From: Podarcis melisellensis
Taxonomy: Eukaryota
Reading direction: 5' to 3' (one strand)
DNA length: 64,000 nt
Assembly: GCA_964234715.1 (NCBI GenBank)
Contig: OZ174280.1
The translations under genes and the position numbers were made by a program. The notes beneath the pieces were generated by a model. The model was given only the letters and a program-made list of their open reading frames with translations, was not told the DNA's origin and searched no databases. Below are positions 35,855 to 60,179 of this stretch, in pieces. The first letter of the stretch is position 1; each line of letters starts with the position of its first letter.

Positions 35855-60179
<24,325 letters not shown>

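Follow-up and report, generated by a model that had tools for sequence, protein, structure and literature searches.

Intron 14 of CCDC17 in Podarcis melisellensis: probable choice between splicing and retention where short and long products part

At the end of exon 14 of CCDC17 in the lizard Podarcis melisellensis, a hexamer of the poly(A)-signal type, a 5' splice site and a potential stop codon are superimposed within a few letters, which raises the question of which of these elements, if any, determines the protein that the gene makes. A preliminary description of the window (the whole 64,000-nt stretch of DNA that was analysed) proposed that competition between U1 snRNP and CPSF at this point chooses between a short protein with one C2-like domain and a long protein with four, and that fixation of the short choice was a simple route to the mammalian gene. 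Little work has been done on CCDC17, a gene linked to cilia, and its isoforms are not discussed in the publications found by whole-word search.

The gene and the last letters of exon 14

The gene on the + strand is, by its homology along the gene to proteins named CCDC17, the CCDC17 orthologue. Searches were run exon by exon or with database proteins. Exon 12 (44130-44354, part of the first C2-like domain), which is 79-83% identical to squamate CCDC17, returned 112 protein matches (E 1e-36 to 1e-20) named coiled-coil domain-containing protein 17 by NCBI/UniProt in lizards, snakes, turtles, frogs, lungfish, teleosts, rays, lampreys and mammals. Fourteen exons spanning 35858-46134 are colinear with the CCDC17 proteins of Anolis and Rhineura, the latter being the nearest protein to the window (80% identity), and the downstream exons of the second half of the gene are 65-85% identical to gecko as protein. 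The Pfam families CCDC17_middle_coil (PF28454) and CCDC17_C (PF28455) are precomputed on CCDC17 orthologues. Upstream of CCDC17, on the minus strand (window ~17000-19300), lie pieces of a kinesin motor open reading frame that match the KIF2-like gene adjoining CCDC17 in the Anolis and Naja loci, so that synteny is kept.

The exon boundaries around the site in question are documented by RNA in the form of Logan contigs (not raw reads) of four runs of close relatives over 44001-50000. Three of these runs (X1, X2 and X6, from three studies and two organisms) are informative, while the fourth (X8) contains no joints and also covers intron 13, and is therefore uninformative. GT..AG joints in the contigs connect exon 12 to exon 13 (44720-44830; joint 44354>44720) and exon 13 to exon 14 (45977-46134; joint 44830>45977), both in X1, X2 and X6. 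Beyond intron 14 (46135-48689, 2555 nt), the joint 48731>49049, found in X2 and X6, establishes the donor of a 42-nt mini-exon (14b, 48690-48731) and leads to exon 15 (49049-49190), the first exon of the second half and the start of the second C2-like domain, which is also recovered by tblastn with gecko and toad long forms and continues through the joint 49190>49372. All of these features lie on the + strand. A very high-copy repeat at 49630-49855, with a summed contig depth of 2e4 to 3e5 in all four runs and many loose contig ends on both sides, is probably a SINE-like element in CCDC17 intron 16.

Exon 14 begins in phase 0 with an acceptor AG at 45975-6 behind a good pyrimidine tract, and is translated as VSSCTAPP...QYKPNK plus AG, its last letters being AAA CCC AAT AAA AG. 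Re-reading of the sequence bore out the letters on which the preliminary description was built. The candidate hexamer AATAAA (46127-46132) encodes Asn-Lys, and is followed by the phase-2 5' splice site AAG/GTGAGA (46132-46140), which agrees with the consensus MAG/GTRAGT at 8 of 9 places and was rightly called strong. Its GTGA is invariant in five squamates, and the long-form proteins of other species cross this point. If the donor is passed over, the frame reads AGG (46133-5) and then TGA (46136-46138), giving a C-terminus ...KPNKR. Only one letter of exon 14 (46010) differs from the window in four close relatives, versus 2-6% of the letters of intron 14.

How much of this arrangement calls for an explanation can be judged from chance expectations. 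Every phase-2 GTRA donor places intron letters +2 to +4 (T-R-A) in frame as TAA or TGA, and thus the stop is automatic and needs no explanation, in agreement with the earlier remark that GTGA donors often create stops by chance; the next donor, that of the mini-exon (CCT AG/GTAAAT at 48731), likewise gives AGG TAA. The hexamer occurs 61 times on the same strand in 64 kb (0.00095 per nt, ~1 per kb), which corresponds to a chance of ~1% that it falls within the final dozen letters of a given exon, and of ~1 in 4 that it does so in some exon of a gene with ~30 exons. With the stop automatic and AATAAA common, the only notable part is which exon is concerned, and this part holds, since mammals end in the homologous exon. 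The preliminary description had referred to the human protein; the comparison made here used the opossum, platypus and rabbit CCDC17 proteins, and all three end in the exon homologous to exon 14, with the common motif (Y/F)TGFVDPPP.

RNA across intron 14 and the candidate poly(A) signal

In X1, X2 and X6, contigs that enter exon 14 through the joint 44830>45977 cross 46134 unbroken for 0.4 to 2.6 kb, so RNA in which the 46134 donor is ignored does exist, as the preliminary description supposed. Record 3 of X1 is continuous over 45977-46982, where its break coincides with an A10 run and is not a tail, and record 15 of X6 is continuous over 45977-46343. The most extensive example is record 8 of X2 (4652 nt), which carries upstream exons, runs unbroken from 45977 to 48729, and is then spliced to 49049-49190 and 49372-49464; it is spliced at four other introns and keeps the whole of intron 14. 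The contig depth in X6 is 7.0 over exon 14 and the 200 nt downstream of it, versus 3.0 and 4.1 for exons 12 and 13. No junction leaving 46134 was found in the contigs of X1, X2 and X6, from which junctions at a lower level could escape. In the dominant assembled RNA, therefore, intron 14 is still present where the introns around it have been spliced out, and the sequence continues past the hexamer. An intron present in RNA from which other introns have been removed, the usual definition of a retained intron, is seen directly in X2, and X1 and X6 agree over the first 0.4-1 kb. Small Logan-derived proteins (P0001, P0003, P0006 and P0007) were set aside as evidence for RNA ends, as their frames run into introns and look genomic or unspliced.

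These contigs bear on the mechanism first proposed, in which the AATAAA at 46127 functions as a poly(A) signal, U1 snRNP competes with CPSF, and cleavage near 46155 yields a compact mRNA for the short protein. The context is suitable: the canonical hexamer lies 2 nt before the donor, a CA dinucleotide at 46153-4 follows 21 nt downstream, within the 10-30 nt typical of AAUAAA at cleavage and polyadenylation sites, and a U/C-rich tract occupies 46158-46169. Among 91 GTRAG sites in the window, the donor at 46135 is the only one with AATAAA at most 14 nt upstream, and Anolis sagrei has both the hexamer and a short RefSeq protein. Competition of U1 snRNP with 3'-end processing, including the suppression of nearby poly(A) sites, is well established (PMC13322065, PMC10404622). 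Against this, the contigs of all three RNA assemblies run unbroken through the proposed cleavage zone and past 46170; neither RNA ends nor breaks nor loose A-runs are recorded near 46150 in X1, X2 or X6, though contigs cannot show ends or minor forms.

The hexamer is also poorly conserved. Among the squamates compared, it is kept only in Anolis sagrei (DNA) and in Rhineura, as judged from protein, and identity between the window and Anolis over six letters is expected in ~1 of 4 cases at 80% identity. The corresponding DNA reads AAGCAA in Sphaerodactylus and AATGAA in Naja and Elgaria, and the donor-region letters of these three genera are otherwise as in the window; Anolis keeps the hexamer and differs from the window in a few intron letters. 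Six further squamates (Candoia, Hemicordylus, Pogona, Phrynocephalus and geckos with K-Q or K-P) read N-E, N-A, K-Q or K-P, which makes AAT AAA impossible in these two codons. Overall, the hexamer is absent from three gecko species, one cordylid, Elgaria, two snakes and two agamids; geckos with K-I-K could conceivably carry one in another frame. Short models nevertheless exist in Elgaria, Candoia, Pogona and Euleptes, four species that lack AAT AAA, and the making of the short form is thus independent of this hexamer. Conservation of AATAAA in other reptiles, which had been suggested as a check, does not extend beyond Anolis and Rhineura among the squamates compared, and cleavage 15-30 nt behind it does not stand as the deciding event. 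Because a minor polyadenylated end would be invisible in contigs, the poly(A) mechanism is best described as unlikely and not as refuted; a share of transcripts could end near 46155, just as a 46134 junction of lower abundance could be present. Most likely, AATAAA is an ordinary pair of Asn-Lys codons, produced in a few lineages when Glu was replaced by Lys (AATGAA to AATAAA).

Further AATAAA copies occur within intron 14 at 46667, 46871, 46983 and 48431. Another, at 47466, was considered as a conserved poly(A) signal deeper in the intron and was rejected, as the gecko has no hexamer there. It lies beside a block (47472-47544) that is 78% identical to gecko and contains a strong pyrimidine tract followed by AG (TATTTTTGTTTCTTTAG); this block might provide the acceptor of a cryptic or poison exon.

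Overlap of a poly(A) signal with a splice donor would have been an elegant means of regulation, but the present evidence argues against it. In composite terminal exons (the immunoglobulin mu secreted/membrane type, and U1 telescripting, PMC13322065), an ignored 5' splice site likewise lengthens the exon and changes the C-terminus. However, the poly(A) signal of those exons is intronic and downstream of the donor, and their polyadenylated ends are documented, whereas the CCDC17 hexamer is exonic, precedes the donor, is unconserved, and has no RNA end behind it in the contigs.

Short and long products and the flanks of intron 14

Both products are already present in public annotation. Short models (RefSeq or UniRef) that end with arginine and a stop at exactly the 46134/46138 column are found in Anolis sagrei (XP_060629358, 676 aa, ...SNKR), Rhineura (693 aa, ...PNKR), Elgaria (702 aa, ...SNER), Candoia (698 aa, ...SNER), Pogona (702 aa, ...SNAR), Euleptes (704 aa, ...TKQR), the frog Pelobates (695 aa, ...NSQR) and Chinook salmon (isoform X2, 676 aa, ...PNQR), the RefSeq short forms of other squamates thus measuring 676-704 aa. 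Long models of Sphaerodactylus, Eublepharis, Paroedura, Hemicordylus, Phrynocephalus, Bufo and Albula cross the 46134 point into three more C2-like domains; the long form measures ~1420-1480 aa in other squamates, the Sphaerodactylus model (XP_048352163) has 1233 aa, and the salmon CCDC17 gene also has a longer product. The RefSeq models XP_060629358 and XP_048352163 together show the features considered here, namely the same exon, the arginine-stop end and the continuation into the second half. The donor at 46134 is therefore the parting point of a short product with one C2-like domain and a long product with four, both being annotated in squamates, a frog and a salmon. This much of the proposed U1-versus-CPSF choice stands, while cleavage behind AATAAA as the element that decides between the products does not.

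The second half of the gene is present even where annotation lacks it. In the Anolis sagrei locus record (29353-34864), the second-half exons lie downstream of the 676-aa gene with ~80% protein identity to the window, and no gene is called there. Conservation of the downstream exons as protein, together with their presence in Anolis sagrei despite the short model, implies that they are translated, and hence that the donor is used at some time or place.

The preferred reading, to which a probability of roughly 0.6 is assigned, is that exon 14 ends in ordinary last codons and a consensus phase-2 donor, that the real event is the splicing or retention of intron 14, and that AATAAA is incidental. 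Contigs that pass through 46134 with no end near 46150, together with a hexamer that is neither conserved nor needed, argue for such a choice and not for a contest of U1 and CPSF over the hexamer. Removal of intron 14 would give the long form, in which the frame extends through three further C2-like domains whether mini-exon 14b is included or skipped. If the intron were kept, the ribosome would read AGG and stop at TGA, producing a short, mammal-like protein with one C2-like domain that ends in ...NKR. A choice of this kind would account for the annotation of CCDC17 with ~700 aa in one set of lizards and ~1450 aa in another, and for its division into two genes in Elgaria.

The flanks of the intron are consistent with a regulated choice, conserved flanks around a tiny exon being the usual mark of regulated splicing. 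The intron starts (46135-46210) with a purine-rich stretch (GAAAGGAGGAAG) followed by a pyrimidine tract, and blastn matches extend 74-78 nt past the donor in gecko and cobra, so that its first ~75 nt are more conserved there than most other donors of CCDC17; GTGA and the purine-rich letters that follow it (GAAAGGAGGA) are kept in five squamates in the DNA alignment. At the other end, the mini-exon acceptor region (48670-48689, CCTGGCTGTGGCACTGGCAG) is interrupted by purines and invariant in an alignment of four squamates, with 103-189 nt of conserved flank in front of the exon (window 48583-48689). The mini-exon encodes 14 residues and ends in a phase-2 donor (AG/GTAAAT) with an in-frame TAA; the Sphaerodactylus long form contains a homologue (SSQEQRSQASPGPS), the models of Eublepharis, Paroedura, Hemicordylus and Phrynocephalus omit the mini-exon, and the Naja alignment has a 2-nt gap in it. 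Its inclusion in one squamate long model and omission from four suggest an alternative cassette, and both junctions, 46134>49049 and 46134>48690, are plausible. As expected of retained introns, a sub-optimal splice signal (the weak acceptor) and a conserved intron start are found here, although the donor is strong. Since it agrees with the consensus at 8 of 9 places, the donor is not the weak point, and retention would probably be governed by the poor but conserved mini-exon acceptor and the conserved first ~75 nt of the intron.

Two other features of the intron were looked for. A 12-bp hairpin pairing 46139-46150 with 46158-46169 (GAAAGGAGGAAG / CUUUCUCCUUUC; intron +5 to +35), with the would-be cleavage CA in its loop, might have masked the splice site or the zone of cleavage; shuffled sequences fold about as well (z -1.5), the stem is weak or absent in Naja and Elgaria, and the idea was rejected. 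An Rfam search for an RNA gene within intron 14 gave no match.

Retained RNA need not be translated, and the next alternative is that there is no switch at all: intron 14 would be slowly spliced or detained in the nucleus, the retained RNA would be an intermediate or a target of nonsense-mediated decay (NMD), only the long protein would be made, and the short models would be by-products of annotation. In the retained-intron contig of X2, introns have been spliced out beyond the stop, as is typical of NMD substrates and detained introns; with a premature stop before downstream junctions, such RNA may be held in the nucleus or degraded, and the short protein may therefore not be made. The RefSeq short models may merely echo the same RNA. 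Record 6 of X1 (48871-49371) is unspliced over later introns too, and the divergence of X2 contigs from the window is about twice as high in the intron (4-5% of letters, 4.4%) as in exons (~2%, 2.1%), as for non-coding sequence. In the Elgaria multicarinata locus record (30975-37679), RefSeq has the 702-aa gene and a separate 742-aa gene starting between the mini-exon and exon 15, a split that looks like the reaction of a pipeline to a stop inside a transcript and is probably an artefact of annotating across the retained intron. What makes this alternative doubtful is that in three independent studies retention is the prevailing state of the assembled path, with neighbouring introns spliced in the same contigs, that both ends of intron 14 are conserved, and that the short end is fixed in mammals, which together with the short genes of lamprey and damselfish shows that a protein with one C2-like domain is viable.

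The Elgaria annotation could also be taken literally, in which case CCDC17 would end at 46138 with a 3' UTR in the supposed intron, and the half with three C2-like domains would start independently within 46135-48700. Coverage gaps inside the intron (47155-47663 in X1, 46571-47133 in X6), the beginning of X6 record 19 at 17 nt upstream of the mini-exon acceptor, and an ATG at 48614 in frame with the mini-exon would all suit two genes. One X2 contig, however, joins exons 12-14 to exons 14b-16, and single long proteins are known from invertebrate-like homologues (1323-1572 aa), a toad, a bonefish and five squamates, which leaves two genes very improbable. The ATG at 48614 was itself rejected as a separate start codon for the second half, as neither Anolis nor Naja has it and non-triplet indels occur in the block that precedes the acceptor.

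Among known systems, the preferred reading of splicing or retention most resembles retained or detained introns that truncate the C-terminus. In both, one intron is kept while others are spliced, an in-frame stop lies immediately behind the donor, the intron has conserved flanks, and a weak acceptor precedes a very short exon. CCDC17 differs in that its donor is near consensus, in that the site corresponds to where the mammalian orthologue ends, and in that retention is here known from contigs.

The mammalian end of CCDC17

The ends of the mammalian proteins give the position a possible evolutionary meaning. At the protein level, platypus CCDC17 ends in the same alignment column as the reptile arginine-stop, and the opossum protein stops 3 residues after DPPP, 10 residues before the platypus/reptile column; only 1.7 kb separate opossum CCDC17 from the next gene. 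Outside mammals, the lamprey and a damselfish have short CCDC17 genes with no C2 exons within 10 kb downstream. With platypus ending at the same column and opossum ten residues earlier, it is plausible that the mammalian gene arose by fixation of the short form; this part of the earlier proposal survives, but the hexamer is not needed for it. A short product that already existed through intron retention would have provided an easy path to the loss of the second half.

From these comparisons, a tentative history may be drawn in which intron 14 is an old, regulated point of splicing or retention, present in jawed vertebrates from salmon to lizards, that yields a product with one C2-like domain and one with four. 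The short product would have made the second half dispensable, and mammals, independently some fishes and perhaps lampreys would have kept only the short gene, with the platypus stop lying at the column of the donor TGA. If both products are made, the cell's choice between them falls at the 46134 junction, which illustrates how half the length of the mammalian gene could have been lost without a disruptive step.
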